64,000 bases of DNA, taken from assembly GCA_964035545.1 (NCBI GenBank), contig OZ037765.1, forward strand, positions 30,069,504 to 30,133,503. Reading direction: 5' to 3'. Numbering within the stretch: position 1 is the stretch's first letter; each line of letters starts with the position of its first letter. This document shows positions 1-30,271 of this stretch, piece after piece. The stretch is from Bugula neritina (lineage: Eukaryota > Animalia > Bryozoa). The position numbers were made by a program, and so were the translations under genes. The notes beneath the pieces were generated by a model that worked only from the letters and a program-made list of their open reading frames with translations, was not told where the DNA came from and searched no databases.

Positions 1-252
1 TTATTTGGGTTATCATTAATGACCTTTAGAACAATATTGATTTCATCTTCCAAACATGTGACCCACTCTTGGTAAACAGAAAATACATTTTCCTAAACAA
101 GTTGATTTTTTTTCTTTCGAGCAAAACAGTTTCCACCTGCTTTAGTCATGAAAATTTCTCTTATAGCGTCCTCCACTTCGAGCTCCCTTTTTTGCCAAGT
201 GTGTTAGAAATAGGTTATAATGTAGAGTATGTATTGTAAGATAATCACAAAC

Positions 253-1381
253 CTTTCATACAACCAGGAAATCTTTCATCAAACTGCTTACTAAACTCTT
301 CTGGAGACATCCATTTAGCCAATTGACCTGCAATGCCATTGAGGGTAGTTGGAGTTGTTTGCCTTTTCTCCTTGGTTACAATGAACGTCTGCTTTTCAAC
401 TCTAGCTACGTCAGCTGGATCAGTTAAGGCCAGCCAACTAAAACATTGCATTTAACCTTCATAACACCTCCATGTAATAAATGCTTACATCTTAGTAACA
501 CTTTGAGTACTTCTTCAGGTGATAAAATTATTACAACTGTAAAGGTGTATAAGCTCTCAGACATAAATAATCAATAAAAACCTGTACTTCATCGCTTCTA
601 GTAATGAAAACCTATAATACTTCATAGCTTCTAGTAATAAAAGACTTACTGCATGTGTGTACACAGTCCCTGCTGCAGCTGTTAGTTTCTACATCAATTG
701 CACACACAGTATAGTTTATTTGTTCCCAGAAAAGAATACATGCTAGAAGCTGAAACATGATAGAGAGGTTGAGGACATACCAGTTGTCATATTTAGGTAG
801 AGCTTGTATCATGCCATTTTCTAGTAGAGTGTCTATCATCTGCTGATTCTCCTCATCAGATCCATCACAGATGTACACATTGTCAGGCTGACATATTGCT
901 GCCTTCTCCTCTATAAAACTGCGTACTTTAGGAGCTAGACTGCTCAGATTGCCTTTTACAACTGTGTACAGCCTCTTCTGCTCTGATGCTGCAGTTGTGG
1001 ACTGGTTACTGAAACAAATTGGGTCATTGAACAGCAAAACTTTCATAGTAATACGACATCTTGTATATGCTTGTGCACATACATGTTGGCATGTACATGA
1101 ATGGCAAATATCCTATATGGATAGCCATAGCAAAGTATTACCTTATTATTATATAGCCTAAGCATAATATTAATATAATAATAGTAGTACTATACATTTT
1201 AATCTTTTTTAGCTAAGCACCAGCTAAAATTACAGGGCCTAAGCTATAAAAACCATATGTCATCATACTTGCAGTTGTCCTAGTGTTAATTAAAATTAAA
1301 ACTTTCATGTCCTGTTTTCCAAAACAATATCCCCAAATTTCTAAAGTAAAATAAGTAACCTCACCTGTTAGTATTGGCCAT
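253..1381 (-). CDS. PCK: Phosphoenolpyruvate carboxykinase (GTP), paralog A, 5' part only (continues past the left edge)
   Basis: Exons 1381-1365 (ATGGCCAATACTAACAG|GTGAG), 1008-781 and 437-253, all GT-AG and in frame: MANTNSNQSTT...[17 protein letters not shown]...[18 protein letters not shown]...RFPGCMKG. These are typical N-terminal motifs of GTP-PEPCK. Confidence 0.93.
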
Positions 1382-2879: not shown

Positions 2880-5800
2880 TCACATGCTCTCAGTTCTATC
2901 CTGGAGATTCAAAAGCTCCTCCCACATTTCTCGAGGTAGATCTTCATTTACCTGTTCTTTAAAATATTTATCTATTTTATTACACTCATCTTTCCAGAAC
3001 TCGGGTGATAGACTAAACAACTCCTTCATGTCAATATCACCCAAACCTTCCACATTCAAAGACCCAGGCTTAGGAATAAGTCCGATGGGAGATTTCGTGG
3101 CCACATCTTTATCTCCAACTCTTTCTAGGATCCATTCTAACACTCTCACATTGTCTCCAAATCCTGGCCACAAAAAGTCTCCTTGATTGTTGGTACGAAA
3201 CCAATTTACATGGAAAACCTTAGGAGTCTTGACATCTTTACGTTCTCCAAAACTCAGCCAGTGTTTAATATAATCTCCAAAATTGTAGCCGAAGAAAGGT
3301 CTCATTGCAAATGGATCGTGCTTTATCATCTTTTTCTTTCCTGAAAACATTTGTGATGAAATTAGCTTTCTAAACAAAGCAATTAAATTCAATTTAAATA
3401 AATATTAATCTTGATTCCAGCCAACAGTTAAACAATAAAAATATATTGTTGAGTAATTTTATTAATTAAAAAGTTGTCAAACTAATTCATTGAAATTGAT
3501 TTCATTAATTGAATATATTTTAAAATTGCCAAATTACTTCATATAACTATATTGATTATCAATTTCATCTACACATGAAAGTACAGCGTGAACTACTTTA
3601 ACTGATGTTCTGGATGGAAAATTCACACAGTAAATCGCTGTGTAACATTAAATAAACTTATAAACAAACACCAAAACTGTCTAGTGGTAGCAAAAATAAA
3701 TATCAAAAAATATATTTATTTGAAAACATCTTATGGAATTAGTATTTATTGTGTGAAAACAAAAAAATTGTGGTGCTTGCAAGCAAAGTTAACAAAGTGA
3801 GTGCAAAGACAAATTTTGCAGATTTTTAGTTTACATTATTTCAGAAAGGCAAAATTAAAAATCAACTGAAAAAAGATGGAAAACAAATTGTTTACAGTAA
3901 AACTGACTCACCGCCAGCTTTATCTGCTGCCGTAGTTTCTGATCTCATAGCAGCTCCAACAAACACTCCATGCTGCCAGTTGAAGGACTCATATACTAGA
4001 GGGACACCCTTGGGACGTCTCCCACCAAATATAATAGCATCGATAGGAACACCAGCACTGTCTTCCCATGCTGGGTCCATAATAGGGCATTGGGCTGCTG
4101 GAGCACAGAATCTATAAATATTAAGTATAGATTTGTTAATTATCAAATATGTGGTAGATTTCATGATGAAGCTGTAAACAATAGAATTTCAGTAGCAAGT
4201 TTAGCTATCATCAATTATAAGTAAAATAGAAATAGGCAAGTGGTTTTGAATTAATTTTTTTGTAAAAATATAAAGGAATTTGATGAAAAACCATTCTATT
4301 ACACATATTATTATGAAATACATTGAAAGGCACATCAAAATATTGAAATAAACTAAAATAAAAAAATATTAAATAACAATTTTGGTGCTCAAATTTACAT
4401 ATAAACAAGGTGAAAATTTCCAGATTAGGGTTTATTAGCTTGTGGCTACAAGACTGATTAATAAGGCAACTCCTACTATGTAGTGGGAACATGTGAACAG
4501 CTAAATGTTGGTCTGTCTTACATATTATGTTGGTGTATTAACAACCGGACATAACAGAGCTAATCTAAATATTACTAAACTAGATTGCATTTTGGACAAA
4601 ATCACAAAGTAAACTTGAGATTATATTAAATTGATGCTTTACAGTGGATCCAAATTTTAGAAAAAATTTCTAATTCATGAAAACACATATATTAAATTAG
4701 ACAGCCTAGAAGGAAACATGCAATTGTATTTTTGTATATTATATAATCGGTAAACCTGTTATTTTCAATATAAAGTTTGCTCTTGTGTATAAAAAACACA
4801 AGGTAACAGGAGTTGTCTTCACATATATAATGTTCATTAAATAAAATGTATAGACGTTTACACCTCAAAAACCTGTAACCTTTAAAAAATTACAAAATCA
4901 AATTCTTACAATAAATTTTTAATTCAATTACCTGGCATTAGGGTGTGCAGCAGGATTTTTCTCATCTCCTGGCTGCCAGTTTTCTTCTCCCTTCCATGAG
5001 GTGATAGTAGCTCCGGGAGAAACTGCGTCATCATCTATTCCTTTCCAGTAAACCCCACCATCACTGGTTTTAGCCACATTTGTAAACACTGTGTTTGACT
5101 GAACAAGCTTCATTGCTATTGGGTTAGTGGCCATGGAAGTCCCTAGAGAAACATCATAATGATAAGAAAATACCACCAAAGAGGTTTTTGCTAACAGAAT
5201 TGGCCAGGACAGCATAACTTTTCGCATGAAACTCAGTTCCAATAATAGCAACAAGACATCCTAATTCGTAGCACCAACTCGGGGCTTCCCCGCTGCTTCC
5301 TGAGATATTACATATTAGTGAGCAAAGAGTGGAGCCGTATTAACTGTTGAATTCAAATGTTCAAACAATACATTTCTATAAACTAACCTGGGGCAACTCC
5401 GAAAAATCCTGCTTCTGGATTGATAGCTCGGAGTTGTCCTTCAGAGTCGAATCTCATCCAAGCAATATCATCACCAACACACTCGATCTTGTAACCTGGC
5501 AATGACGGTGTCATCATGGCTAGGTTAGTCTTTCCACAGGCACTGGGGAATGCAGCTGCTATGTACTTTTTAACTCCTTGTGGGTTGGTGATCCCCAGGA
5601 TCTGAAGTAAACAACAAATATGCATTTATATAAAAGGAAATGTTCTGTTAAAATATTCTGGTGATCAAAGTTCACATCAACTTACCAGGATCTTGCATGC
5701 TAAATTTAGACATGTGGTTTTTTGCAACTTGTTACAAAAACAAGAATGCACCAGATTATAAGCAAAATGAATTTGGGTACAGATATTCCTCGAATCTTGA

Positions 5801-8800
5801 CAACCTACCAGCATGTGCTCTGCCAGCCAGCCCTCTCTCTGGGCCAGAATACTACCGAGGCGAAGAGCAAAGCACTTTTTACCCAGCAGAGAATTTCCAC
5901 CGTAACCACTTCCAAATGATGCAATCTCATTCTTGTCAGGTATATGAGCAACCATGATCTCATCAGGTTTACATGGCCAGTTGTTCACCAGAGGTTCTAT
6001 AATGGTATTCACCAGGCATGATGTAGAAATCAAACTGATATTTATGAAACCTAAATTAAATCCTGCCAAAATTAAGGTAAATAAATTTGTTACCAAGCAA
6101 GGAAGTTTTCACAATTTTTCCAAACAATGAAATTTCATTTGTTGATTAAAGGGACTACCATGCACTAGCACTCTCACCCAAGCTCAATGATTCACCTTGG
6201 TTTTAAATATATGCGTTCTCCATTTCATTTATAATGATTGCCTTGAAGTAAATGCCATACTGTTATTGTACCCAAGCAAAGTAAACAAGCAATATTGTTA
6301 CTTATTTGAGTGTAGATATTTCAATTTTTTATATTTACACAGTTACATGCTCCATAAAAAGAATGCGAATGAAAACATACACTGCATAAATTTTGTTCCA
6401 ACAACATATGAAGTTATTTTTCAAAAAAGAAATAAACATTTTTGTGAAATTTTCTTAGTAGCAAATAGCTAGTAACTTAGTAAAGATGTATTTAAATAAA
6501 TTCAATTGAAAATTTTCACCTGACTAATGTCCATCGAAGCATATTTCAAAGCTGACAAAAAGAAAATAATTTTCCATAAAATGAGGTGACAACACACCAA
6601 CCTCTGATTTGCCAACCACACACGCCCCTCCCCCAGGCGTGACAAGAAAAAAAACACTGATTAACCAAACACAATACAACTTTTCTGTTTATTGATTTCA
6701 ACTCATAATTGAATGGAAATTCTAGCTAACCAACTGAGTTGCATAACCAGATGAGCATGAGTGCTGACTACCTATGATGTCCTTAAAGTATGTGTCAATA
6801 AGCCTGAATAGAGTCAAATTTAAAATAAATCAGTGACCAATACAATGCAATACAAAACATAAAACCTACTAGAATGTTGGTGGTTTGGTGCTCTTGTTTT
6901 ACCAAAACCTTTCTTCTACACCCCTACAACTAATTTATTGCTAACAACTCATGATGTTGTCAACTGAATTGTGCAAGTAGGGATATTCAGTACAAGTTCA
7001 TGTTGAACATTGCCCAATTAGTCTTTGGTTACGGAAACAAAACACACTCAGTCATGTTCTACTAATCAATTGTTTTATGCAATATTTATAGTGGAGTGAA
7101 TCAAGAGACCACATTTTTGCCATGTCACACTTTTGAAAGCTGCTTTCTTTCAGCAACTGTAAACACTTTCTAGCTGTGCTCTAGCATGGGATTGGATGCT
7201 GCGCTAGCTAGGACAGTGAATTACGCCAACCAGAGTTATTAGTTTGTAAAAAAAATTATGCAAAATGTTTACAACCCTTCAGCGATGTCAGTATAGTTTA
7301 AGGTAAAGTGCAGCTTAAAAGTAACGCAACTGATTTATTGACGTTTTCAAAAATTATCGTCACTTGTGTAGATAAAAACACAGTATGAATATGCAAGAAA
7401 ATTAGTCAAGTGATTCAAGAGCTAAAGTAAGTTGCTTACTATCGAGAGGTAGAGGCCGGCCCACAGAGTGTAAAGCTTTTACAAATTCACTGTCCCCGAG
7501 TGTCTGGAGTACGTTTGCACCCATCCTAGTCATAATTCTCATACTAGCCACTACGTATGCGGAGTCGGTTAACTCTACCCCAATCTTCGACAATGGTGAG
7601 CCAACTGGGCCCATGCTAAATGGTACCACGTACATTGTCCGTCCTAAAACAGCATAAGAAATTAAAAGTATGTAACATGACAGCTTTGAAAACTGCTACA
7701 AGCCGTGTCTTGTACATGCCTGTTGCAATATATTCATCCATGCTATATAAAGACAAACTAGTTATGCTGAAAATGTAGAAGATCAATTGGATAGATGATG
7801 TGAAAATATTTGGTCATCTTCAACAGTGATTTGTCATAACTTGGGCCTTACCACATTGCATCATTTCGTCAATTAGGCCTTGATTAAAAACTATTCATTT
7901 CATAGTTACAAAATCATTCATACTATTATATTATAGACTTGATGAGTGGAAAGTCAAATATGCTTTACAAACCTTTCATACAACCAGGAAATCTTTTATC
8001 AAACTCTGTTTGAAATTCTTTAGGCGACTTCCATATTGCCAGTTCCCCCTTAGCTTCATTAATAGTAGTTGGAGTCGTCTGCTTTTTGCCCTCGGTCACA
8101 ATGAATGTCTCTTCCTCAACCCTAGCTACATCTCCAGGATCAGTTAAGGCCAGCCAACTATAACAGACACATTACATTAGTAAGAACATACACTCTAGCT
8201 GACCACAAATACAATACATTCAACCACAAATACAATACATTCTACTACAGATACAATACATTTTAATAATTTTTACCAAGGAAAAGTTACAATCGTATAA
8301 ACTTCAAGACTGCCTACGTCCATCAGAAGATTTCTGGTGAATCATCACACCATCATTTTCCAAATTAATTATTATGAATTATGAATGATAGACAAATTTA
8401 TTTATAATAATTAAAACATGATAGAGAGGTTGAGGACATACCAGTTGTCATATTTAGGTAGAGATTGTATCATGTGACTTTCAAGTAGAGTGTCTATCAT
8501 CTGCTGATTCTCAGCATCAGACCCATCACAGATGTACACATTGTCAGGCTGACATATTGCTGCCTTCTCCTCTATAAAACTGCGTACTTTAGGAGCAAGA
8601 CTGCTCAGACTGCCTTTTACAACCGTGTACAGCCTCTTCTGCTGTACTGATACTGAGTTCAAAGGTGATGCATTGATTCTAAAACAATCGTACAGTAAAT
8701 TAACATAAACATAAAAATAGTGTTAATGAGGTTTTTAAATGACAATATTTCCTTCAAATTTCTCAGTTATCAAGAGAAAACACCAAAAATCAACAGCCTT

Positions 8801-9023
8801 GTATAGTTAACCTATTTCATTAGCAACCAAGTTATAGATCAAACACAGTTGCCAAAGTCAAAGTGAAAAATTAATCAACACTTTTATACTGGGAAACTGT
8901 ATATTAAGTTAGTTTATAACCACAGTGAGTTTACGCAGTAACAGCACTAAATCTTAGAGTATGATAACTTTCAAAATTGAAAATATTCTGAAAGCTTATA
9001 TCAAACCTTTCAGTGATAACCAT
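2880..9023 (-). CDS. PCK: Phosphoenolpyruvate carboxykinase (GTP), paralog B, short (cytosolic-type) isoform, 9 exons, 638 aa
   Basis: Exons 9023-9007, 8678-8442, 8157-7973, 7643-7440, 5996-5809, 5601-5388, 5142-4932, 4111-3912, 3340-2880. Sum 1917 nt, open frame, GT-AG introns. Motifs [16 protein letters not shown]-loop [42 protein letters not shown]. Confidence 0.96.
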
Positions 9024-9129
9024 TTCTGAAGGTAGGAGAATAAAGTCAGATAATAAAAATTATTGATGCAGCAATTGCACTACTTTCAACAATCAATAAA
9101 TAATATAGCACCACACCAGTGGGCTCATA

Positions 9130-9210
9130 TTATATACGATTTGCTGACTGCATACACTGCATTCTATTGGTTGAAAAAAAGGTGTGAGTACATCTCTTTG
9201 CTTTCATTGG
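9130..9210 (-). promoter_or_regulatory. TATA box (9136-9130) and two CCAAT boxes (9166-9170, 9206-9210), proximal promoter of PEPCK B
   Basis: Minus-strand TATATAA about 107 bp upstream of ATG 9023, with two minus-strand CCAAT motifs further upstream. Confidence 0.5.
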
Positions 9211-9909
9211 CTGGAATGTAGGCAACATATGGGTCCATTGCATGACAAACGCACTCAGTTGCCTAGTGGAAAGTTCCCCGTATAAATATTAATGCACTGT
9301 AAACGCATGGTCGCTTGCATTGCATCATATTATTTTACTTTTGTAACTTGTTTTGAACGCGAAGGGTGTGATGGAGGTGTGTCGCTAACCGAGCACCGCT
9401 ATTGGCTGCAGGCTAATCACGATTCCGTTGTCAACGCTCTGACTATAACGAAATCATTCTGCAATACAGCTCCATTGCCTGTTAATCCGGGTTAACAAAT
9501 ATTATTGCAATTCAGCCATTGTTATGGGTCAAGTAGAATCATACTATCCCAGCAACTGTTGTTGCAAATATTGCTACTGCCAAATTTTCTATTTGGGTAT
9601 CCAGTTTATTGAATAACTCCAGCACTTAGATGGCTTGCCCTCAGCAAACAAACTAACTGGCATTTTTCACCCAATATTACTGCGCACACTGAAACTGTAT
9701 ATAATATTTTTCAAATGCAAGGTAGTAGTGCTTGGAGAGTCAATAGTATAATAACAAGATCCAACAGTCAGTGATGTTGGCATACAACTCATAAGTAGCT
9801 CAGCAATGGTGGTTATAAAGAGTAATCGAAGTCAGGCCTAGTTTATTAAAATCATACAATTTTTATTCCGAAAGTTGCAAAACTTAAAGCAGAAATGAAA
9901 AAATGTCAC

Positions 9910-9950
9910 AGTCAGTCAGTTGATTAGTCCGTCAGTCAGTCAGTCAGTCA
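9910..9950. repeat. (CAGT)n microsatellite, imperfect
   Basis: cagtcagtcagt...gtcagtcagtcagtcagtca read directly. Confidence 0.8.
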
Positions 9951-12900
9951 ACAAGTAACATGGAAGGAGAGGGAATTCTCTGAAACAATAAAAATTTCAC
10001 AGAGCTTCCCTAAATTCCAGCAGGATGCAAATTCCTTGTCCAAATTAATCAAATGAAGAAACACAGTTGCAATATTCACTCTAGCTAACTACATCCTAGA
10101 GTGCCTAAAAAATGCATCACTGAAGAGTTAATGAGAACACTAAACCAACTAGCCTTTTTATTGAAGTTTCAGGAATTCTCACGTCCACAAACTTGAAATT
10201 ATGTCCATCAGTTTGTCACATTTACCATTGATTGAAAAAGCTTGATGGAACAAGCTGATTTATGAAATGAGTTTCAGAATCATTGGAGTTGGAATATTAT
10301 TGCATTAGAGATGACAACTCCTCTGCGTGTATTTTTTTTAATAGAGAGGGCAAATATATAATAGATGTTTTTAATTCAAAGCCTTCAGTCTTTGTTTACT
10401 TTGTACACTGTGAGTTCAGATTGCAAGCTATATGCTATACAAACAGCCCTTGGCTCAATTAAACTATTGAACTCTATTTTCATATCCATAAATTTATCAG
10501 ATTTACTAAGAATTAAGACTTTGACCAAAGGACAAATAACTCCAAGAAAGAGTTACTAGGATCTATGAATGTAGCCCGAAGGAGCAGAATTTAGTACTTT
10601 TACACAACACCAACATGATTATATTCACAAGCAAAGTCATTTGATATAAGTTGGTAAAATTGTTGTTTTTTATTCTAATCAGCAAGATTTTTGCAAACCT
10701 CTAAAATTAGGCATCAGCATTATTTTGAGAGTAACATTTCAAATAAATTAAATGCAACATTGAATAATATTTTTGAAATCAAATTAAAAGATTCAAGAAA
10801 CTATGAAAACAAAAAAATCAAATTTTTGTCTGGAAACTCCTAGAACTAACCTCGGAAGCTTTGTATGATTACATGAGTATAGCAAAGACCTCCTACAACA
10901 GAGCTAATCAATCTTACTTCCTTTATAAAAAAAAACGAAGTACCCCTCCCGTATAAAAGTTATATATCTAGCAAAAAGGCTATTATATGAATCTAGCAAC
11001 TATACTAGTGATCATAGGTAAATTTACTGAATAGACGGTGCGTATTAATATCTTACAGACATCTCCATTAAGTGGTATATGCTAGGTACCTTCAACACAA
11101 TACTGCAGAAATATCTGTGCTAAATTTAACATTTGCATTACTAGCAGGTATAAAAACCGCACATGCTGTCAAGAGTTAATTATAGAAGCTGTTAGCTGAA
11201 AGGTAATTATGCAACCTGTAGCCAGCTATATAAAAGAATAGTACTGACTGCAAATCAATAGCAGTAATTTGAATCAAGACCTCATTCCTTAAACGGTATG
11301 AATAGGGCTGCAAATCTTGAAGAAGCATAAGCACAATATTTTACAGTGGTGATGGTAGCTACAGAACTGAAGGCAATGATTAAGTAGCACCTAGTACTTG
11401 TTTACCTACTAGCCTACTAAATTTAGCTAGATGGTTTCCTATAATGGCTCAAGCAAATAATTATATGATATCTATATGCATGGTTTTGTTATTTAAGTCA
11501 CGTGACAGCTCAAGTAGAATGAAAATTAACGCTAGCAACTATTGCATAGGGCCATCACTGTTCCAAGTGATGAATTGGTAGCTAAATTCAGACTTAACAA
11601 GAAAACTATTTATAGGTGAACTTTAAACCTTTTTGTTATTGCAATTACAAACTTCATGTATGAATGAAACAATATATAACTGTCCTAGAAAGCAGGATTT
11701 CTATTACATATGTTGCCCTGCAGTAGACCGGTAAGAAATCACCTACAATAGAGTATGAAAAGTAATAAAGTTCATTGGGCTATTACAATGCTAAGTCGAT
11801 AGCATGCTGTTCAGATTAGTTTTTACTCAGTCTGAGTGATGGAGTTTAATTCATCAAATATTTGGCTTAGTCTACGGGTCTGTTTACCCCCCCCTCCTTC
11901 TGTATACGGTGACAGTTCACATTACTTCAAGCATTTTGGGCCTACTTTGTTCTTGAGGATATTGAAAATTCAACTATTCACAAATAAAGCTTACTATGTA
12001 TATGGCATTATATGACACTGAAATACTTGGATAATAGGTTTTATTTATTTTTATCAGTAGTTTTTAAATTAATCTAAATTATTGTTGGCACTTTGGGGTA
12101 CAGAATAATGCTATAAGAGTTGCCCCACCTTTCCCTTGCAAGTAGTTCTAATGTTCACATTCATCAATATATAAGCTCATATTTTATGTCCAATTTTAGT
12201 TTACTGCATTTCTTACATGCATATCTGTATATTTGTCTGGAATTCAGGTTGAAGTTATAAATTGAACACTTGTAGTAGAAAAGATCACAAGAGCAGAATC
12301 ACAGTCTTTTATAGTGTTATCAGATATTTTTGTAAGACTAAGAAGTTGTCCACTTTCGAAATAAAGAATTCTCCTCCATAGCTAATTAAAAACTATACCT
12401 CAAAGCTATAGAAAGTCAATAATCTCGGCACCTAACGGAGACCAGGACAAGTTTTGGAACTATAAAATATAATTGCTATCTTGTTATAATGCTATCAACA
12501 CTATCTCATCTGTAGAAAATGAAGTAAATTTTCCGCAAGGTTAGATGCTGCGGGTGGGGCTAGAATGGAAAATTACCAACTTGGTTTGTTGACTGCTCTA
12601 AACAAGGTGACAGGTCTTAAGGTGCTTCCACATGCAAGTATCTCATTCATCATTTGTCAGACGTGGCATGAATAAAATAATGCTTGCTGTGATTTTTTTG
12701 CAGAAAGAAATTAATTAGTACAAAGTCCATTGCTCTAATGACGTCACCTGGCTAGCTCAAGGAGTAGCCATGGCTATGAAACAATAAATTCAGCCTTGAC
12801 CTTACAGATAGAACAAGAATGCTTCATAACTATACCAGTACATAATTTGTACTTCAAGAACCGCCCATTGCTTGTGAGATTTACATCCTAGCTTCAGCCA

Positions 12901-14954
12901 CTGTTAAATCATGAACATTACTAGCAGTAGTAACAGCGCACTGTCTGTATAGTTTATAACTGTAATGAAGACAAAGGACTAACAAAAGAGCATGAATAGA
13001 ATAAGCTAGTGTTTTCATTTTTCTATGCAGTATATTTGGCTGGTTTACTTCGTTGATTAAATTGACCACAATAAGGAGAATGCAAGCATAGGGTGCCCCA
13101 TGAGAGCAAACGGTGCAATTTTTTCAGACTACAGAATTGGAATAAAACACTTGAATAATCATAGGAAAAGTTTGCAGGCCAGATGCCAAGAAAAACATGT
13201 GTGGAATGATCTCAATGCCAAAATTAATATACTGGTACACTTGGCAATGAACTTTTAGCCATTGTTTAGGTGGGAGAACTAACTTGAGGTTTTTAGAGAA
13301 GTAGAAATAAACGATTACCAACCGGCAGAAACAATAATTAACATATTATGTAAATTTGGCAGGTTACTGATTAGTAGTAGTGCTGTAGTTTGCTAAGTGC
13401 CGGTAACTTCTTGAAACAAGGCTTAGCCTAGCAATCCTCCTGTTGTCCTGATATGCTAGAGCTGCTGGTGTAGAAAATGTAGACCAAACCCTTTGGCCTT
13501 TATTGCACCAGCTAAATCCCAATTCATAACCAATATGATAGTGCATGCGGATTTGGCAGCCCATAATTGAAAAACTGAATAAAATTTGTTCTTACACAAT
13601 TAGCAACAGACCAGCTAAAAAAAGCTATTCCATGCGGTGGTATAACAATAGGTAATAATGGAACTCCTCACAAAAGCAACTCAATGTTTTTTGTATAATC
13701 AGAATAAACGTAAAGTAAAACTCAAGATTTTTAGATGAACTATTCCTGCAAGCCTCCGAGGTTGAATGGCTTTACAGTATTATATTTCAGACATCTAGAT
13801 TTACAGTCAATATTTTTAAATGTTAGCAGAAATATCAACAGGAATTGACTATGACTTCTTTGGCCATTCTTTGGATATAGGCCAAAGAAATAAAAAACAA
13901 GAAACATTCATTTAGTAGTTGAAAAGGCATTTAGAATTGCAATATGCAACACCAGCTTTTCATTCTATATCAAAATAAATTTTAAAATATTTCAAAATTC
14001 TGAGACTAAGCATACTTACTTGTTGCTAAATACAACTAAAATCAAATAAATAAAATTACTAGTCACCTTATACTGTCAGTCATAATCAGGGTCACAGTGA
14101 TAGCTCTAATAATATGGTGATATCACTTTTATAGTCAATTTGGACAATGAGTTTAGCATAACAAATCAAAATATTGTAAAATTTGTATCATCTTACAATT
14201 TAGCAAGCATTGTTGGACGTGAAATTTTACACATATTTTGTATATATACAAATTCTCAGTTTTATAGTCATACTCATACTGATATTCATATTTATACCAG
14301 CTTTTACTGGCACCAGTAAACTGGACTGTATGTTGACCAGCGGTCAACGTAATGCCAGTCTCAGTGACTGTGATTCAACATTATTCACTGGCACAGATAA
14401 CAATGCTGATACTGAGTTGATGTAAACGTTGCAGTAAAACCAATTTATTAAAGGTGCCAGTGTGTGTTACTGTGTAAAAAGTATCTTGTAGCTATAATCT
14501 TCCTTTCAACAAATCAACTCTAAGCAAGTTATTTGAAATTGATTTAAAATTTTATTAAATGTTGGTGACTATGAGAACTAGTCTAGTGAGAGTATATTTA
14601 GTATTTACTACTAAAAATATTAAACTCACAGTCACAGTAATATTCATACTATCAGCATCACTGTCATTAATAATTAATAACTGTCAAGTAAACGAAGCTT
14701 AAGTATGACAATAAGTTATTAACTTTGAGCAACAGCATTACTATCACTACGAGTATGAGTATCAACTCTTTCACTTCCACGTGACAGTATTAGTATAACT
14801 ATAACTATAAGGACTTCCATTTATTTTTAATGAATACTGTAACAATACTGTATTTAATGAATACTGTCACAAGAACGTAAGACCGGTGTCAAATAGTATT
14901 CCTATAAACAAAAATAAGTAAGTAAAAACATTTACTTTTAGCATTTAACCATAC

Positions 14955-15094
14955 CTTGCTATAAGGCCCAAACACGTAGGGGTTGCTTGCCTACTAGTAC
15001 TTGTAGTACTTCTACACGCGCTTGCAAAGCTGTTGCACTGAAAAAGTGCCCAAGTCTTGCACCTCGAAACACCAGCTAAGAATCTGACAACCAT
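14955..15094 (-). CDS. PCK: Distal alternative first coding exon of PEPCK B encoding a putative mitochondrial transit peptide
   Basis: acaATGG start context; 140 nt = 46 codons + AG, then donor GTATGG. Phase 2 matches exon 2 (8678). Peptide MVVRFLAGVSRCKTWALFQCNSFASACRSTTSTSRQATPTCLGLIA(R) has no D/E and is rich in R/S/T/A. Confidence 0.78.
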
Positions 15095-16020
15095 TGTGAC
15101 TCTTGAGTGTACAAGTAATGTTTCCCGGTCAAGAAAAACTAGTGAGTAAAATTGAAAGAATGTGAAACTGGGCGCTGAAGGCACAGTAGCACAACTTTTA
15201 CAACAGTCACAACTGCAATGACGCACAGCTGATCGGACACCACACCGGTTTGTTTTGAACGTAACCCCGTTACGCCGATTTGAACTTTGTAAAAATGCGC
15301 AAATAAACCAATCCCGCAATGACCGACTTATCATTGCGTAACCAAAGGGTTAGAGAGCATAACACGCTGATTAAATACGCTATATCCAATAATGCTAAAT
15401 TTTTCAGCTGTCCCAATTTCCAAGAACTTGAACTTAAAAATTATCAACGGCAACCCATAATAAGTGATAAAGCCGAGTGATATCTAGTTCAAATTTCAAG
15501 GCCAATATTAAGATTAAAAAGCTGTAAACAAATCTATCCTTCTCACTTGCTCTAACTACTGCACTTTTGAAAAGATTTAGGTCCCAAGGAAGGTGCATCT
15601 ATTCGCTTTGTAGCATTTTCTGAGTTCAATTGTTTGTGACAAACTTCCAAACTATGTTGTAGAAAATAAATATTTAGGCCATAGGACACAAACTATTATC
15701 TGAATAAACTTTGCGAAAAAAACTTCTTCAGACAGCTTGTGTTAAAAAAGCAAACCTGAAATCATTTTTATAATTGTCGATTATTGAACGAAGTTGCAGT
15801 GGGTTGAATAGTTGAGACATGATTCCCATTATGTCATTCCCGGCACCGGCTATTCAAATATTTAAACAAGGTTACATGAATATTTTACAGTGTATTTTGG
15901 CAGCTGTAGTAACTAGCCCACTAGCTAACCCATTATATATTATTATTATTATTATATATATTATTATTATATATGTGAATGTCAGGTATGAGTAATGCAG
16001 CAGGGACGTACTTAGCAGGA

Positions 16021-16231
16021 AATGGTGCAGGTCATTTCGTACACAAGTTTTTTCATATCCACTTTTTCAGGTCATCTTTTAAACATTAATATAAATTAAC
16101 TAAAATACATAATTTTTATATTTATTATTTGGGTTTGGGGTTAGTTCATTATTCATTTTGTGTACAGCAGTTTGTGTACTAAACAACCATTTTGTGTAGG
16201 AAACCACTTGTGTACGAAACAACAGGAACTC
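16021..16231. mobile_element. Small MITE-like element
   Basis: Perfect 14-bp inverted repeat TTTCGTACACAAGT (16035-16048) / ACTTGTGTACGAAA (16206-16219). Flanking 7-bp direct repeat AGCAGGA (16014-16020, 16232-16238). AT-rich noncoding interior. Confidence 0.6.
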
Positions 16232-17282
16232 AGCAGGAGAAACCAATAAACTAATATTTCCTTATTGGGAGTTATAGTTCAATGGGAAAAGCCTATTGCT
16301 AGACACACCTACAGAAGTTTGACTAAAGGGTGGTGCTCAGTTTCTATACACAAGTAAGAAAGCCCTGACCCAAACTCAAAGGTGGTTTATTCATAATGGT
16401 CGCCAGCAAGAGGTAAAGCTATATCTAAAACTAAAAAACTGTTTCTGTGCTATTTGAAAACCACAACAATTAGTCTATATAGCCTATTTGTCAGCCCTTA
16501 GTACTATAGGTGTACCCACAGGTCTGGCAACAGAATGCAATACAGTAAGTATGATTTGAATTATTAACTTGCTAGAAATTTTTTCAAAGAAGAATTTTCT
16601 TAACTTTAAAAACGCTCAGCACAGTATTGTAATGAGATAGGTACCATTGGTGTGGAACAATAAATTTTTTGTGTTTTACAGTCCAACTATGCAGAAGGAC
16701 TGTGGTTGAAATTTAAAATTCTTCCCCAAAGAGCCAGAGCGTTAAAGCCTGGAATAACAAGTTGACAATTAAACTGTTTTATTTGTATTTGACACCTTTA
16801 ACCATAATATAATGCAAGATTTCACTTTATGACGGAGTTATCCTTACTATTACTTTCTTTTAATTATCGTAAATGCTGATATTAGCTTAGTTTCATAAAA
16901 AGGGCTGCTAGACAAGAAAAGTTTTCCGCTACAATTTTGTTATTTGTATCAAACATCCGTTTTAGTGCAATGTCGATTGAAGAGTGTAGATTGTAGAAAC
17001 TAATATTAATAATAAGTAGTAATTTCAAAGATAATTAAATTATAATAAAATTATTTTATTACTCATCTAAATGATAAGATAGTACATGCTGAAGATTGTA
17101 AGTATATGCAAAAATGTAAATAAGTATAACAATTGATATGATAATCATAATGAAAACTCAAACTATTAAATTCTTAACGAATAATATTAATAATATTAAT
17201 AATAATGTTACTGATTTAAATTAATATTATAATTAATATTGTAATTAATATCATTATTAATATACTATAATATCAATATTAA

Positions 17283-19307
17283 TACTTGACTTACTTGACT
17301 TACTTGAAGATGCAATCACGTTAGACCACTATATTAGTGTAAGCGACGTGCCTCGTTTGGTGAACAGAATTATTAAATGTAGTTAATACTTTTATCGCAT
17401 AAGTGCAGTTCTGTTTTAAGACTTTGGTGCCAGTACAGGGCCTTATGAGTCCTGTCTGTGAGCAGCATTTGATGTTATTTTCATATCACGTATTGTTCTG
17501 GGTAAGAAGCTGGCATGAAATAGTGAGGTGTTAGTTCTAAAAGTGGTGGGCATGCCATTTGACTGGGACCTGGTGGTAACTGATGTAGTGGGCTGATCGA
17601 TGAGGTGTTCATACGACTTTGAGAGTGAAGGATGATATTCCTCTTTGGCCAGGATCCGCATCAAGAGACTAAGTCGTAGGTCTTTGCGCCTGTTTTGCAG
17701 GGGGTTAATCCAAGCCTAGATCTTGCCTCATCTGAGCCAACCCTGCCTTTAATACCTGCCACAAATCTCACAGCCTGCTCTTGCACTTGCTCAATATCTA
17801 CTACAGCCTTCTTGGAGCTCGGGTCCCACACAGCAGCAGCATATTCTAGGTGAGGACGACACAGGGCTTTGTATGCTATTAACTTCGCCTTTTCTGGTGC
17901 CCAATACAGTGCCCTTTTAATCATCCCGAGTTGTCGTTTTGCTGTGAGTAATTTCTGCTGGATATGCATGTCGAACTTCAGGTCTGATTGTATTGTGACA
18001 CCAAGATACAACGCGTGGTCAACAACTGCGAGAGTCTGGCCTCCAAGTGAATAGTTATGTGTGAATTTTTTGTTACTAAAGATGATGATCTTGCTTTTTT
18101 TCACATTGAAAGACATACCCATCCTACATGCCCAGGAGTCCAAAGAGTTCAGGTTGTGCTGAAAACGGGCTGTGTCCTGCTGGCTTGTGATGGTCTGGTA
18201 CATTAAGGTGTCGTCTGCAAATAGGGCGACTGGGCAATCTACCTCGTTTGGAAGGTCATTGATAAATATCAGGAAAAGCACAGGCCCGAGAACTGATCCC
18301 TGAGGTACCCCTGACGAAACTGGGAGACTGCTTGACACCTTACCATTAAGTATCACCCGCTGGGACCTATCAGTAAGGAAGTTATGTATCCAGTGAAGTA
18401 TATGTGTGTCAATTGTTCCGATCCTGGAGATTTTTTCCATTAGAAGTGCATGCGGCACCTTGTCAAAGGCTTTTGTGAAGTCAAGCACCGCAGCATGAGT
18501 GCTCAAGCCTTTATCTGCCGCACTGAGAATATCATGCATGGTGGCACAGAGTTGTGTCTCACATAATAGCCCTTTTCTAAAGCCGTGCTGTCTGCTGTGG
18601 AGGAAACCATCTATTTTCTCTAGTAAAATACCAAGAACAATGTGCTCTAGTAGCTTACATGGAATGCTAGTTAGGGAGATTGGCCTATAGTTATTGGCAG
18701 AGCTCCTGTCACCACTCTTGAAGATAGGGGTGACATTGGCAGATTTCCAACTGTCAGGGAGTTCACCATGCTGTAGGGACTTGTTATAGATCTGGGTCAG
18801 GCATTCTGCAGTCAGATGTGTATCAATTGTAAGGTCAGCTTTACGTAGTTGGTCTGGCCCTGGAGCTTTCCCATTTTTAAGGCCTGCCAGTAGCTTCTTC
18901 ACTCCCTCGATTTCAATATGGGTGGTGGGTTCATTAGCATGTGTCTTTGGTAGCTTTTGAAGCTGGTGTCCACTGTTGAATTGCTTGTGAAAGTGGTTAT
19001 TTAGGATATCTGCACACTCCACGGCATCATCTGTGGACGAGTTGTTTGGCTTGGTTAGACGAATGAGCTGTTTACTAGTTCGCGTACCCTTTAGGTGTTT
19101 GTAAAATGGTCTGCAGTTGCCTTCAGCCAGAGGTTTGCATATGCGTGACTCCAAATATGCCTTCTTGTGCTGTCGCATATTTTTCTTTGCCTGCTTTCTG
19201 TACTGCGCATATAACTTATGATCAAAAGGGTCACCTGTCTTTTTAAATCTGTTATATAGGGAACGCTGCTTTTTAACCATTTTCCGGCTATCCTGGTTAA
19301 ACCACAT
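17283..19307 (-). mobile_element. 5'-truncated non-LTR retrotransposon (LINE, CR1/L2-group-like) with reverse transcriptase ORF
   Basis: 548-aa ORF with RT motifs KAPGPD, NYRPISL, QHGFR, LDFTKAFD, GVPQGSVLGP, LFADD, YLG. It starts at the WF linker, so the endonuclease and ORF1 are absent. A frameshift near 17700 separates the C-terminus (17443-17664). The 3' tail is a 9-bp tandem repeat (AAGTAAGTC)n at 17283-17307. Confidence 0.92.
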
Positions 19308-20695: not shown

Positions 20696-21244
20696 ATGTG
20701 TGGGATACTCTGCTTGGTTACTGGCTCTGATTGTAGTGACAGCTTCTTAAGGGTAAGGTTGTAAGCCGCTGACATGAAAATTGTTTATAAATAATTTTAA
20801 AATGAAATGTTGAATAGTAAATTTCTAATGTTGACATACTTTCAACTTTGAATACTTTAAAATTTAAATTGACATTGCGCAGTAAGGTTAGTAAGAACAG
20901 GTTAGAAATAATTATATGATTTTATAATCATGTAATATTACTATAACGCTGCTTTAAATAAACTATCAGATGAATTGTCAACAGGGTATCATCAGCAATG
21001 CTGGAAATGGTGGACTGCTTGAGAGAAGAGGCCCTGACTACCAGGGTTACATGGAGACAGGGCTAGACTCAACATGGAAAGTTCTATCATACAGCACTGT
21101 GTTACATATGAGAGGAGAATTGTGTAAGCAGCCAGTGTGCAATTCTACTTCTGGTGGTATTTTGCTATGGAATGGTGAAGTCTTTGGTGGAATTCAGGTA
21201 AAGTTTACGTAAAAGTATTAGGATTTAAATATTTATTCATTTAA

Positions 21245-21281
<37 letters not shown>

Positions 21282-24200
21282 TATAAATAAGTATACGAGA
21301 AACATTGTTGATTTATTACTTTATTAGGCAAAGTAATTATACTGATATTTCGGGTACCACTGTACCCATCTTCAGAGTAGCAATGAATGAAATTCAAAAA
21401 TTATTATGTTATGTTAGACGTTATGCATGACACAAAGAATAGAGAGTGGCAGTTATTGTAAATTATTGAAACTTAGGGAGATAATCTTATTTTATATATT
21501 ACGCAGGTCAAAAATTATACTGATTTTTTTTGCATAAAAAATAAATTAGAGTTGACAAAAAAAATAGATATCTAAATATAAAAACAGCAAGAATTAGTGA
21601 AACTATATATTATATATACTATGCAAATAACGCTTCTGATGGGTTTTTAGGTTTGAAGAGTAAAATATATATGAACAATTATTTTACAGTAATGTTTTTC
21701 TAATTATGTATTTAAATAGTATTTTTGCCACTTTGAAATTGTGTAGGCATTCTATTTTAGGTACCCGACTTGGATAATGATACAGAGGTTCTGATATCAC
21801 TTTTAGATAACTGTAAGGATGATGAGCAGATGTTAAGTGTGTTTAAACAGATACAAGGTCCTTATGCATTTGTTTACATAAAGGTATTATAATCATGCTA
21901 CTGTTTTCATGCCTTCCTCTTATCATTCTTGTATGCAATGTATGCAATGATGTATAATCTAATGTTTTATTTTGTATATTCTTCATAATATAGTGAGTGT
22001 AGTAAAGATTTAAAATGCAGAAACAGGTGTAGACAATTTCTGATTTTAGAGAAATCAGCGTGAACTATGGTTTGGAAGAGATGTATTTGGTAGACGTAGC
22101 CTCACATTTCTGCTTAATCCCGACTCAAAAGACCTGTATTTGTCATCAGTTGCTTTGTCGCAAATCACAGAGGTTAGCTATAGTGGATGATTTATTACGA
22201 GGGTAGCTCCGAAAAATTGAGAAAAGAATAAACTGAATTTTAATATGATTGTTGTCATTAACTATATAGTGTCTTCATGTTAGATTCACTCAATTGATAC
22301 TATCTTGTAAGAACTGATAATGATTACAGTTTAGTAATGAGAATAAAATCCCAAGCTAAAAAAATGGAGAACTATGAATTATTGAAACAAATAGTGAAAT
22401 AGTGACAAAATTTATATAGTATATGAAAAAGTTTTCATTGTTAAACTGATATATGACATGATACAAGTGTTATTGTTACAGCTAAACTCTGGTAGCCAGT
22501 GGAAGGAGCTTGCCGCGGCTGGTATCTACAAGTTAACGGTGGAAGAGGGTGGTTATAAAATAGACTGTTTTCCATGGAAACACAACACCATCATGCCTAA
22601 TGAAGAACTCAGATCATCTATTGTACACGATTCATTGTTGGAACTTCCTAATTTTCATTCCTTAAACTTAACCATTCCGAGCACAGACGACCTCATTGTT
22701 CTACCAGATAGTGTTGATATTGACAAGGTGTTGACTTTAACAGCTACAAATTTTCAACAAGAGTCTGAAAAGCTTTTGGAGAAGTTAAAAATGGCGGTGT
22801 ACCGCAGAGTGGGTGGACATTCCTACGTCTGTGATAAGTGCAGAATCAACAGTAACTGTGCGATGGCACATATATCAGTGATGTTTTCTGGGGGTATAGA
22901 TTCGATGATGTTAGCATACCTAGCTGACCAGTGTGTGCCAAAAAATCAGCCTATTGACTTGTTAAATGTAGCCTTTGAAACAGGAAGTGGTGGAAGCTAC
23001 GATGTTCCTGATAGGGTGACTGGACGACTCGCCCTAACTGAATTGGCTACTGACAGAGTATGGAACTTTGTTGAGGTGTGTAAGTGCCAAATTTGTAGAA
23101 AATATGCATTCAGCTTTTTTAAAATATAAAACATAGTTTTTGTCGGTAAACTTTATAATTGTAGTATTAGGTAGAGATTAGAGATATATTAAAAAGTTAA
23201 CTATTGAACAAATAACGAAATCATCATTAAACATTTCCCATGGTAAATTTTCAAAAAATATCAACATCACCGCTTATGTTGCAAAGTTGCATAACAGCAC
23301 TTTTTGGCATCTTCCATTGCTCTATTACTTTAGAGTTTGTTAAAAGAAAGACAACTCCAATTAGGTTTCTAATAAACTCATTCACATCAGATTATCAATT
23401 GAAAAACAGTAAAAAATGCAATGCCGTTGCTGATAAACAATTAGTTGTTATTTCAACTTTAATGCTGGTTTGTAGATAGATGTAACTAAAGAAGAGTTGC
23501 AAAGATACAGGTAAGTTTCAATGGTAAATTGCAAGCATTTCAACAACTACATTATTTATTTTCATCTCAATTATGAACTTTTTTGATATTGCTCGTCAAG
23601 AGCGAAACTATTGATCAAATGTGTGGATAAAGTAGAAATCCTCAATTCAATTTATATACACAGTCTTTTATGTTGAAGAAAAGAAAGAGTGTCAGAATTG
23701 ATTTGGCCCTTAAATTCTGTGTTAGATGACAGCATTGGATGTGCAATGTGGTTTGCATCTCGGGGGCGTGGCTCAATAGTGTCAGCAGATGGTAGCAAAA
23801 TATTGTATACTAGCACATCGAGAGTTGTCTTATCCGGCCTAGGAGCAGACGAACAACTTGGTGGATATTCCAGGTGAATGTTGGCGACTAAAAGAGTTTT
23901 AGGTTTGGGTTAATTAGTTTTAGCAATATTAAATACTAAATAGCTGAATAAGTAGGAAAAAGCATGGGAAATCCAGCAAAATTAAAAAGAACCTTGATTA
24001 TTTAAGTGTATTTAATGATATTTTACTAGTTTTGAGCAAAAACCTATGTTCATTAGCAGTTGAATTGGGATAAATAGCTAAAACCTGGAGATTTCCAGTG
24101 TGTACTAAATTAAGTAAAATGACCCATATGTATTCTAAGCTTCTATAGTTAATGTTTTAAGTAAATTATAAATTTTACAAACATGACCTTTTCTATAGAT

Positions 24201-29700: not shown

Positions 29701-30112
29701 GGTTGAATAAAAAAGCTGCTTCAAGTTAAACTCAAGCAAATTCTTTATAATAACATTGTTAATTTCACTTTCAGCTATGAAATTACCTTTTCACGTTGGC
29801 TAGGCCATTTGGTATTTTTCTTATTTTCCTACATTTTACAATCTTGACAGCCCTTCTACATAGAGTATTTATATCAAGCACTTCTTTGACTTTGCTGTAT
29901 GAGCCCTCTCCCAAAAGATCTCCTTTTAAATATTTGTCCCCAATGAAAGAAGCATGCGTGTCTGGAGTGTATATTATTTCAGCAGAGTCTATTCTAATTA
30001 TATTGGGAAGGAAGTCATCAGTAGAGTTCATGAAATCGTTCCATTGAGCCGATGTAGAATCATGAGCATACCGATCTGCTGAGAGATCATCCTTTTGAGA
30101 ACCCAGATCCAT
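26735..30112 (-). CDS. STK11: Serine/threonine kinase STK11/LKB1, 8 coding exons, 425 aa
   Basis: Exons 30112-29787, 29660-29577, 29350-29128, 28502-28366, 28185-28058, 27656-27599, 27374-27151, 26832-26735; sum 1278 nt. Motifs [22 protein letters not shown], the LKB1-type DLG, SQGSP, KVDIWS; ends [10 protein letters not shown] (CAAX). Confidence 0.95.
29351..29576 (-). other. U12-type (minor spliceosome) AT-AC intron, STK11 intron 2
   Basis: 5'ss ATATCCTTTT, branch site TCCTTAAC (29367-29360), 3' end AC. Splicing gives EKQKK-YIVLEYC in frame. Confidence 0.93.
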
Positions 30113-30271
30113 AGTCACACATGGAACAAACAGCTTAATTTTTCAGCACTTGGCTTACAAATTTGATAAGCAGTTGCTTTAGTTGAATCTGCTTGTTTTC
30201 TTGGTAATCCAGCGGTGACTTTCGTATGCCCAGTTTACTGCATATAAAACTGAACAAGTGACTTATGATTA

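Follow-up and report, generated by a model that had tools for sequence, protein, structure and literature searches.

Can a single gene for GTP-dependent PEPCK supply two cellular compartments through a choice between two first exons? Animal PEPCK is known in both the mitochondria and the cytosol. In vertebrates the cytosolic and the mitochondrial GTP-PEPCK are encoded by separate genes, PCK1 and PCK2, and an N-terminal presequence sets the mitochondrial form apart. For other enzymes, from unrelated families, the choice of promoter sets whether a presequence-encoding exon is included and so gives two locations. The question is raised here by a GTP-PEPCK gene (gene A) on the minus strand of the window, by which we mean the whole stretch of 64,000 nt of Bugula neritina DNA that was analysed. 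Gene A has nine coding exons, a stop at 2880 and two candidate first exons. Probably, these two exons are served by a promoter each and lead to a mitochondrial PEPCK of 679 aa and a cytosolic one of 638 aa.

The exon map of gene A was built by tblastn against the full-length PEPCK P0010, combined with GT/AG and frame logic. The representative protein library gave mostly fragments and was useful just for this full-length reference. Exons were searched singly, and joined models served only for length, motif and identity counts in scripts.

2880 to 8678, minus strand: common exons 2 to 9 of gene A, including the TGA stop (tblastn, GT/AG, frame)
8678 to 8442, minus strand: exon 2, with its acceptor after ttttag
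8157 to 7973, minus strand: exon 3
7643 to 7440, minus strand: exon 4
5996 to 5809, minus strand: exon 5
5601 to 5388, minus strand: exon 6
5142 to 4932, minus strand: exon 7
4111 to 3912, minus strand: exon 8
3340 to 2880, minus strand: exon 9, TGA stop included
9007 to 9023, minus strand: proximal alternative first coding exon, 17 nt, MVITE + AG, phase 2 (from the sequence)
14955 to 15094, minus strand: distal alternative first coding exon, 140 nt, 46 codons plus 2 nt, phase 2 (from the sequence and contigs)

Each exon of gene A matches Pfam PEPCK_N or PEPCK_GTP, in order. The exon peptides span positions 2-217 of PF17297 and 7-356 of PF00821, with both the N- and the C-terminal domain complete. 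All of the active-site and nucleotide-binding motifs of animal PEPCK that were checked are present in gene A as well as in a neighbouring paralog, gene B. The proximal form is an open model of 1917 nt, and the distal form exceeds it by 123 nt. The initial annotation had described an acid-free distal peptide of 46 aa with five R/K encoded at 15094-14955, a 17-nt exon at 9023-9007 with TATA and CCAAT boxes upstream, a CpG-richer distal promoter and the joining of either exon, both in phase 2, to exon 2 at 8678 to give 679 or 638 aa in frame; the sequence agrees on all of these points. As in the genes of Colias and Bombyx discussed below, each of the two 5' exons has its own ATG and upstream region and is phase-compatible with the common exon 2.

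The junction 14955->8678, which that annotation had singled out for checking, is present in a contig that crosses from the distal donor into exon 2. In run X4, contig 21 (427 nt, depth 96.7) aligns to 14955-15338 and continues for 27 letters past 14955. These match 8652-8678 with two mismatches (25/27), and no match to them within seven mismatches was found elsewhere in the window or in the paralog region. Because the extra letters match 8678-8652 only, the junction exists, and the distal exon is confirmed as real, transcribed and spliced in frame to exon 2. The support for the junction is one contig, with 27 bridging letters (fewer than the tool's 31-letter rule), from a lineage diverged by 7%, that is, about 93% identical to the assembly; the kind of runs X1 and X4 was guessed as RNA. 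RNA-type contigs of these two runs cover the distal exon at a depth of 42-97, compared with scattered contigs at a depth of 2-8 inside the intron.

8679 to 14954, minus strand: intron of 6276 nt removed in the distal form (from the junction), within which the proximal exon and its promoter lie

Run X2 ('symbiont metagenome') matched low-complexity repeats only, near 14264-14290 and 14740-14790, and no contig of run X5 was placed on the stretch examined around the distal exon; neither run is taken as evidence.

The distal exon begins with an ATG at 15094-15092 (context gtcacaATGg) and ends in GCAAG/GTATGG at 14955. Its peptide, MVVRFLAGVSRCKTWALFQCNSFASACRSTTSTSRQATPTCLGLIA(R), is presequence-like, with no D/E and five K/R, or six when the split codon AG/A is read as Arg. 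The first 47 residues of the long form accordingly contain 6 K/R, 0 D/E, 12 S/T and 6 A (net charge +6), and the first acidic residue stands at position 83, with none in the preceding 82. This fits the composition of a matrix presequence, in which, over 20-60 residues, Arg/Lys, Ser/Thr and Ala abound and Asp/Glu are absent. For this DNA it is moderately unusual at most: no D/E together with at least six K/R occurs in 1.7% of stop-free stretches of 46 codons. The maximal hydrophobic moment of 0.69 (residues 2-12) is reached by 17% of shuffles, and the Arg-X-X sites at R28, R35 and R47 are none of them diagnostic for MPP cleavage.

In the RNA lineage, which is about 7% diverged, the distal exon carries 4 substitutions in 140 nt, compared with about 22 in 244 nt of the upstream leader. 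It also carries an in-frame +3 nt that adds an Arg, and no acidic residue is gained. ATG 15094 is the likely translation start of the distal form. In the reference, ATG 15334 lies upstream in the same frame, which stays open over 129 codons. A start there was considered and rejected, since in the RNA lineage this frame is closed by a stop located 12 codons ahead of ATG 15094, and the sequence upstream has diverged about three times as much. A search with the 129-aa open frame that includes the distal exon gave no match among 5.8 billion proteins. Within the genome the distal region occurs once, and a search of 8000-17000 against Rfam gave nothing relevant.

Upstream of the distal exon the surroundings differ from those of the proximal one.

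15095 to 15668, minus strand: 5' leader of the distal exon and CpG-rich promoter region (X1/X4 contigs, CpG o/e)
20696 to 23129, plus strand: divergent ASNSD1-like gene, starting with MCGILC at 20696, a conserved neighbour of the distal exon
9024 to 9330, minus strand: proximal promoter region, with TATATAAT at 9136-9129, CCAAT at 9210-9206 and 9170-9166, and TGATGCAAT at 9327-9319

The CpG o/e is 1.14 at 15095-15400, against 0.46 ahead of the proximal exon and 0.41 over the window as a whole. Transcription of the leader reaches at least 15338, as contigs of both X4 and X1 follow the genome without a break up to that position; it may extend to about 15668, as X1 runs on to 15551 with a further 117 loose letters. 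The collinearity of X1 over at least 570 nt upstream of the ATG implies that the leader is long and holds upstream ATGs, or else that a second transcript overlaps here.

The proximal exon, ATGGTTATCACTGAAAG at 9023-9007, is followed by the donor GTTTGA. Its length and phase are those of exon 1 of gene B and of a first exon in the bryozoan Watersipora subatra (isoform X3), and the box architecture of its promoter recurs upstream of both. The transcript-like JGI protein P0162, of 74% identity, begins with MVVDV/K, likewise of the proximal type. As a shared promoter motif TGATGCAAT was rejected: both bryozoans have it in front of the proximal exon, but it is no more frequent than chance would allow. 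The X4 contig that carries the distal junction ends exactly 27 nt into exon 2. An assembly graph with k=31 would branch there if a second exon ending in AAG joined exon 2, whereas with an unspliced intron, which ends in TAG, the expected length is 28. The position of the break therefore seems to fit a second upstream exon ending in AAG, like the proximal one, in the same run. Taken with the conserved 17-nt exon and the promoter boxes, it suggests that the proximal exon of gene A is a putative functional start.

The arrangement has a counterpart in W. subatra, the nearest named relative found, whose RefSeq entries XP_067927790-92 are isoforms X1, X2 and X3 of a single gene, identical apart from the first exon. 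They are automatic models, and no published description of them was found. X1 has an acid-free, basic N-terminus of 29 aa encoded 18.4 kb upstream, 607 nt from ASNSD1, while X3 starts with MVKVD + AA from a 17-nt exon. The latter lies 310 nt ahead of exon 2 and is preceded by two CCAAT boxes and CATATAAG. This PEPCK, about 73% identical in aa to gene A, thus shares with it a 17-nt first exon with CCAAT/TATA about 0.3 kb before exon 2, and a distal first exon in phase 2 that encodes a basic peptide free of acidic residues and neighbours a divergent ASNSD1-like gene. It differs in having a third alternative first exon (X2), in the 18.4-kb distance of its distal exon and in being a single gene, without a tandem copy in the 44-kb locus. 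BLASTP found no similarity between the distal peptides of gene A and W. subatra, and the distal regions gave no trustworthy alignment outside the boxes. What two lineages and a second genus keep is an N-terminal stretch of 30-47 residues, open and in the same phase, that is rich in Arg/Ser/Thr and lacks acidic residues.

Directly downstream of gene A, in tandem, lies a second intact PEPCK gene. Gene B encodes 637 aa that are 84.5% identical to gene A and has the same exon structure, and its sole first exon is of the short, cytosol type.

1 to 1381, minus strand: 5' part of gene B, with exon 1 at 1381-1365 (MANTN + AG), exon 2 at 1008-781 and exon 3 at 437-253

Its remaining exons lie beyond the start of the window (locus L009). 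TATATAAG stands at 1479-1472, and the TATA/CCAAT promoter of gene B has a CpG o/e of 0.94; no trustworthy alignment of the promoters of genes A and B was obtained outside the boxes. An ortholog of gene B is found on a Bugula neritina contig that begins at its exon 2 and so does not bear on the conservation of the first exons of gene A. With exon 2 alone as the query, two short models only were returned, one a Logan genomic ORF and the other a fragment from Bugula neritina, neither of which shows the N-terminus of gene A. The initial annotation had proposed that one gene makes both enzymes. The spliced distal exon and the two unlike promoter regions speak for that proposal, which had overlooked the intact tandem gene. 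As gene B has the short first exon only, the compartments may be divided between two genes and not set by one switch.

The explanation that we prefer would run as follows. Of the two tandem GTP-PEPCK genes, the upstream one would use two promoters, each with a first coding exon of its own, and these exons join exon 2 in one shared phase. When transcription starts at the distal CpG-rich promoter, beside the divergent ASNSD1-like gene, translation would begin at ATG 15094 and the product gain a basic, hydroxylated, acid-free N-terminus of 46 residues, with which the 679-aa protein would most likely be imported into the matrix of the mitochondria. Use of the proximal TATA/CCAAT promoter would place the start of translation at ATG 9023 and yield the 638-aa protein without a presequence, predicted to be cytosolic. 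The compartment of each form is suggested by composition and by precedent in other animals. The layout with two first exons would be ancestral for this bryozoan group, and a later tandem duplication would have copied the proximal promoter and exons 1p-9, leaving the downstream gene limited to the short form.

A division of labour between the genes, with gene A dedicated to the mitochondrion through the distal exon only, gene B cytosolic, and the proximal exon and promoter of gene A a silent or near-silent relic, is possible and on the whole doubtful. It would draw on an intact gene B with its own CpG-richer promoter, a strong donor (GTGAGG) and a short first exon only, a gene that could by itself provide the whole of the cytosolic enzyme, on the weaker donor of the proximal exon of gene A and the background-level CpG of its promoter, and on the abundance of the distal transcript in two runs. 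The duplication is also old enough for subfunctionalisation, to judge from the aa identity, the unalignable promoters and the ortholog of gene B in Bugula neritina, and Drosophila has tandem compartment-specific paralogs (PMC3556304). However, the proximal exon of gene A retains its ATG, length, phase and GT donor, with TATA and two CCAAT boxes at the usual distance, and the keeping of these features despite the age of the duplication suggests continued selection. A GTTTG donor is moreover employed at exon 3 of both genes, and the X4 contig appears to break where a second AAG-ending exon would join exon 2.

It is improbable that the distal exon is real and its peptide does not target the matrix, in which case the long form would stay in the cytosol, be dual-localised or be translated poorly, and the choice of promoter would be a matter of regulation (constitutive versus inducible). 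The only moderately unusual composition for AT-rich DNA, the non-significant amphipathicity, a leader that may exceed 570 nt with several upstream ATGs in the reference, and the lack of similarity to the W. subatra peptide would all accord with it. Against it stands the acid-free Arg/Ser/Thr-rich N-terminus, kept open and in phase across the two lineages and the second genus. Presequences typically keep composition and not sequence, and PEPCK occurs in both compartments in animals. The Lepidopteran forms, too, are split between them by TargetP (PMC3556304). An artefact at the junction, due either to chimeric assembly of the contig or to a processed DNA copy carried by the sequenced lineage, is very improbable: set against the single contig, its 27 bridging letters and the guessed kind of run, the break falls exactly at a predicted GT donor and AG acceptor, in frame, with a match unique in the locus, the exon is covered far more deeply than the intron, and the orthologous splice is annotated in W. 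subatra.

Two promoters and two forms of the enzyme, as preferred here, place gene A among known systems. Vertebrate and Drosophila PEPCK genes have one N-terminus each, whereas gene A carries both kinds of first exon. No confirmation that penaeid shrimp make both forms from one gene was found in the papers searched. In Colias eurytheme, C. meadii and Bombyx mori, alternative 5' exons, in which alone the forms differ, give mitochondrial and cytosolic PEPCK from one gene (Watt et al. 2013; PMC3556304). These exons have their own 5' UTR each and are spliced to common downstream exons; the forms were confirmed by cDNA and assigned to the mitochondrion and the cytosol by TargetP (PMC3556304), while for gene A it is the distal junction that is shown. 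The novelty implied by the initial annotation was thus overstated: gene A is a further example of a known mechanism and involves no new principle. The mitochondrial exon 1 of Bombyx is found at a great upstream distance, 15 kb past a second PEPCK copy in tandem, which resembles the distal exon and tandem copy found here, although that second copy was judged an apparent pseudogene and gene B is intact. Further differences are the phylum, the 13 exons of the Lepidopteran genes as against nine coding exons plus the alternative one, and the shortness of their alternative exons (splice after residue 11) compared with the 46 residues in gene A. The compartment-specific tandem paralogs of Drosophila (PMC3556304) are closely linked, like genes A and B.

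Tentatively, the locus may be a living intermediate between two ways of making mitochondrial and cytosolic PEPCK, in which alternative first exons were ancestral and duplication followed. Watersipora would then retain the ancestral state, and a cytosolic-only copy would free gene A to become a dedicated mitochondrial gene, with its cytosolic exon redundant. If gene A is expressed mostly from the distal exon and gene B is cytosolic, the locus would show how pairs such as PCK1/PCK2 or those of Drosophila can arise from an ancestor with one gene and two promoters. The choice of a presequence by promoter and first exon in PEPCK would be extended from Lepidoptera to a lophotrochozoan phylum; since the layout is kept between two bryozoan genera, the mechanism is probably old and widespread and not an insect oddity. 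The younger tandem duplicate without a presequence exon would offer a convenient natural case of alternative-exon targeting giving way to compartment-specific paralogs.

A complete gene for a GTP-dependent PEPCK (gene A) lies on the minus strand of the window, and the peptides of its exons match the Pfam domains PEPCK_N and then PEPCK_GTP in order. Exons 2 to 9 were mapped by tblastn with the full-length PEPCK reference protein P0010, combined with GT/AG sites and a check of the reading frame. A slash marks the exon end.

Features of gene A
15094-14955, minus strand: distal first exon, from the ATG at 15094 to ...GCAAG/GTATGG at 14955
9210-9206 and 9170-9166, minus strand: CCAAT boxes of the proximal promoter
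9136-9129, minus strand: proximal promoter box TATATAAT
9023-9007, minus strand: proximal first exon, ATGGTTATCACTGAAAG/GT
8678-8442, minus strand: exon 2
8157-7973, minus strand: exon 3
7643-7440, minus strand: exon 4
5996-5809, minus strand: exon 5
5601-5388, minus strand: exon 6
5142-4932, minus strand: exon 7
4111-3912, minus strand: exon 8
3340-2880, minus strand: exon 9, with TGA at its end

Both first exons end with two bases that are completed by the first base of exon 2, giving model proteins of 638 aa (proximal start) and 679 aa (distal start). The two first exons, their coordinates, common phase and product lengths, as proposed in the initial annotation, are thus borne out by the sequence and the exon map. 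The same holds for the proposed TATA/CCAAT promoter of the proximal exon, whose boxes were found, and for a CpG-richer distal promoter: the CpG value is 1.14 at the distal promoter of gene A versus 0.46 (background) at the proximal one, and 0.94 at the promoter of the tandem paralog, gene B.

Public sequencing runs bear on the use of the distal exon. In a search with 14955-15260, runs filed under the same organism label shared only a few 31-mers, because the sequences of two of them, X1 and X4, differ by about 7% from the assembly; this divergence likely means that the runs come from a cryptic sibling lineage or that polymorphism is very high. Run contigs were placed on window positions 9701-15700, a stretch that ends short of exon 2 and the proximal exon. 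Each of these two runs, from different studies, yielded one contig on 14955-15338 (X1, 710 nt, depth 42.5; X4, 427 nt, depth 96.7), and the 5-kb intron stretch carried just scattered contig pieces at depth 2-8. The X4 contig extends 27 letters past 14955, and 25 of the 27 match exon 2 over its first 27 bases (window positions 8652-8678); no second match at up to 7 mismatches was obtained in the window or the paralog region. Since these letters match the start of exon 2 alone, the junction from 14955 to 8678, which the initial annotation had set as the decisive check, is present, on the basis of one contig with 27 bridging letters from a diverged lineage and runs guessed to be RNA. For a 6.3-kb skip whose ends fall exactly on GT and AG, explanations other than splicing are hard to find, and the distal isoform of gene A almost certainly exists. 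In the same runs, the 115-nt stretch 15338-15454 of the assembly is absent and 106 different letters stand in its place. X1 and X4 contigs at depth 4-8, 93-96% identical to the window, also cover 12487-13030 in the central part of the long intron, one of them ending in Illumina adapter; these contigs may come from precursor RNA, from a transcribed repeat or from an exon absent from the annotation.

The translation start of the distal form was assessed by introducing the sequence differences of the RNA lineage into the reference. In the frame of the ATG at 15094 the reference has no stop for 80 codons upstream, as far as an ATG at 15334; in the RNA lineage, that frame is closed by a stop 12 codons before the ATG at 15094. 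The 140 coding bases of the distal exon carry 4 substitutions in that lineage (two synonymous, L6F and W15L) and one additional in-frame codon, which adds an Arg, and the 244 bases upstream of the ATG carry about 22 substitutions. This pattern of substitutions and the stop fit coding from the ATG at 15094. Up to 15338 the X1 and X4 contigs run collinear with the genome, and X1 goes on to about 15668. The leader is then either long, with ATGs ahead of the start, or overlapped by another transcript.

The first 47 residues of the long form include 6 Arg/Lys, 12 Ser/Thr, 6 Ala and no Asp/Glu, and the first acidic residue is at position 83. Among stop-free 46-codon windows of this AT-rich DNA, 10% are free of acidic residues and 1.7% combine this with at least 6 basic ones. 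For residues 2-12, the amphipathic moment does not exceed that of shuffles. The composition therefore fits a matrix presequence without proving it; the distal peptide is probably a mitochondrial presequence.

Among named relatives, the bryozoan Watersipora subatra ranks first, with about 73% identity to gene A and gene B alike. Its RefSeq annotation holds one gene with three isoforms that differ at the N-terminus only: X3 (638 aa) begins MVKVD/K, X1 (662 aa) has an N-terminal 29-residue basic peptide without acidic residues, and X2 (640 aa) has a third N-terminus. The exon of isoform X3 is 17 nt long, with two CCAAT boxes and CATATAAG upstream of it and exon 2 310 nt further on, and that of isoform X1 lies 18.4 kb upstream. 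A transcript-like JGI protein of 74% identity begins MVVDV/K. Together with the W. subatra isoforms, this N-terminus indicates that the layout with two first exons is conserved. No alignment was obtained between the distal peptides of the two bryozoans, the usual situation with presequences. In RefSeq, PEPCK isoforms differing at the N-terminus alone are also found in the scorpion Centruroides sculpturatus (P0186/P0183, 680 versus 646 aa), and several ticks have them too (about 670 versus 649 aa); because of these, alternative first exons of PEPCK may be common among invertebrates.

The two bryozoan loci also share a neighbour, an ASNSD1-like gene (plus strand in the window, start MCGILC at 20696). 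In both species this gene (start MCGIL) and the distal PEPCK exon are transcribed away from each other; on the Watersipora locus (L012) the gene is at 9394, minus strand, and its start is 607 nt from the exon of isoform X1. The shared arrangement suggests a bidirectional and CpG-rich promoter region of long standing. In the window, a 548-aa open frame with an RVT_1 domain (17661-19307, minus strand; E 8e-35), a LINE-type retroelement, sits in this interval, which is so short in Watersipora. Farther along are a protein kinase domain exon of a neighbouring gene (29020-30118, minus strand) and exons of a phospholipase C-like gene with PH_12 and PI-PLC-X domains (36484-36891 and 44947-45234, plus strand). 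Long open frames of a repeated heptapeptide-like unit on both strands of 49871-50374 (STHLCSY... / DVLSHYR...) point to a 21-nt tandem repeat array. The contig that carries the PEPCK locus is 35.6 Mb long and has genes of animal type.

Gene A is followed on the same strand by a second PEPCK gene, gene B, which starts about 1.5 kb past the gene A stop codon.

Features of gene B
1479-1472, minus strand: promoter box TATATAAG
1381-1365, minus strand: first exon, 17 nt, ATGGCCAATACTAACAG/GTGAGG
1008-781, minus strand: exon 2
437-253, minus strand: exon 3
Past the window start, minus strand: later exons, in the adjoining locus L009 (G000:C1:30060001-30070000)

Gene B is intact (637 aa, all motifs), has the exon structure of gene A and is 84.5% identical to it; its first exon is of the 17-nt type only, with its own TATA/CCAAT promoter. 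An assembly-wide search of the 216 Mb found PEPCK loci at genes A and B only. A Bugula neritina contig has an ortholog of gene B at its start, aligned through introns at about 86% identity, and genes A and B are nearer to each other than either is to Watersipora; the duplication is therefore younger than the Watersipora split and older than the split of that Bugula lineage. The animal itself is probably a bugulid.

The claim that one gene makes both enzymes stands as far as the distal splice of gene A is concerned; it missed the intact, short-form-only gene B and is therefore not the whole picture. Gene B alone might be the source of all cytosolic enzyme, with gene A serving the mitochondrion. 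The point at which the X4 contig ends, exactly 27 nt inside exon 2, would speak for use of the proximal exon of gene A: if a second upstream exon with AAG at its end, such as the proximal exon, made the k=31 assembly graph branch, the contig would end at 30 - 3 = 27, and an intron-retaining precursor with TAG at its end would put the end at 28; polymorphism could have the same effect. The proximal exon of gene A retains its ATG, length, phase, donor, and TATA and CCAAT boxes despite the age of the duplication, which is old enough for the promoters of genes A and B to be unalignable, and this retention speaks in favour of its use. Its donor, GTTTGA, is weaker than that of gene B, and this weakness, with the background CpG, counts against it. 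On balance, gene A seems somewhat more apt to make the short form as well than to have given it up. The tandem pair can also be read as a transitional state, in which alternative-exon targeting is being replaced by compartment-specific paralogs. In both bryozoans, TGATGCAAT, a C/EBP-ATF-type composite motif, occurs 200-300 nt ahead of the proximal first exon (window 9319-9327, minus strand; L012 27924-27932, 27625-27633 and 26189-26197, plus strand); its 3 copies per locus versus about 1 expected are within chance.

Overall, the observation of the initial annotation is confirmed and its interpretation partly supported. Watt et al. 2013 (PMC3556304) confirmed with cDNA and TargetP that Colias and Bombyx use alternative 5' exons with their own UTRs to produce mitochondrial and cytosolic PEPCK from one gene; the mechanism is therefore already known. 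As a contrast to this lepidopteran arrangement, the same authors point to vertebrates and Drosophila, with their paralog pairs. The Bombyx gene has its mitochondrial exon 15 kb past a second, tandem copy (PMC3556304), an order closely resembling that of this locus. The gene A locus and the Watersipora models carry this known alternative-5'-exon mechanism of PEPCK into the Bryozoa.
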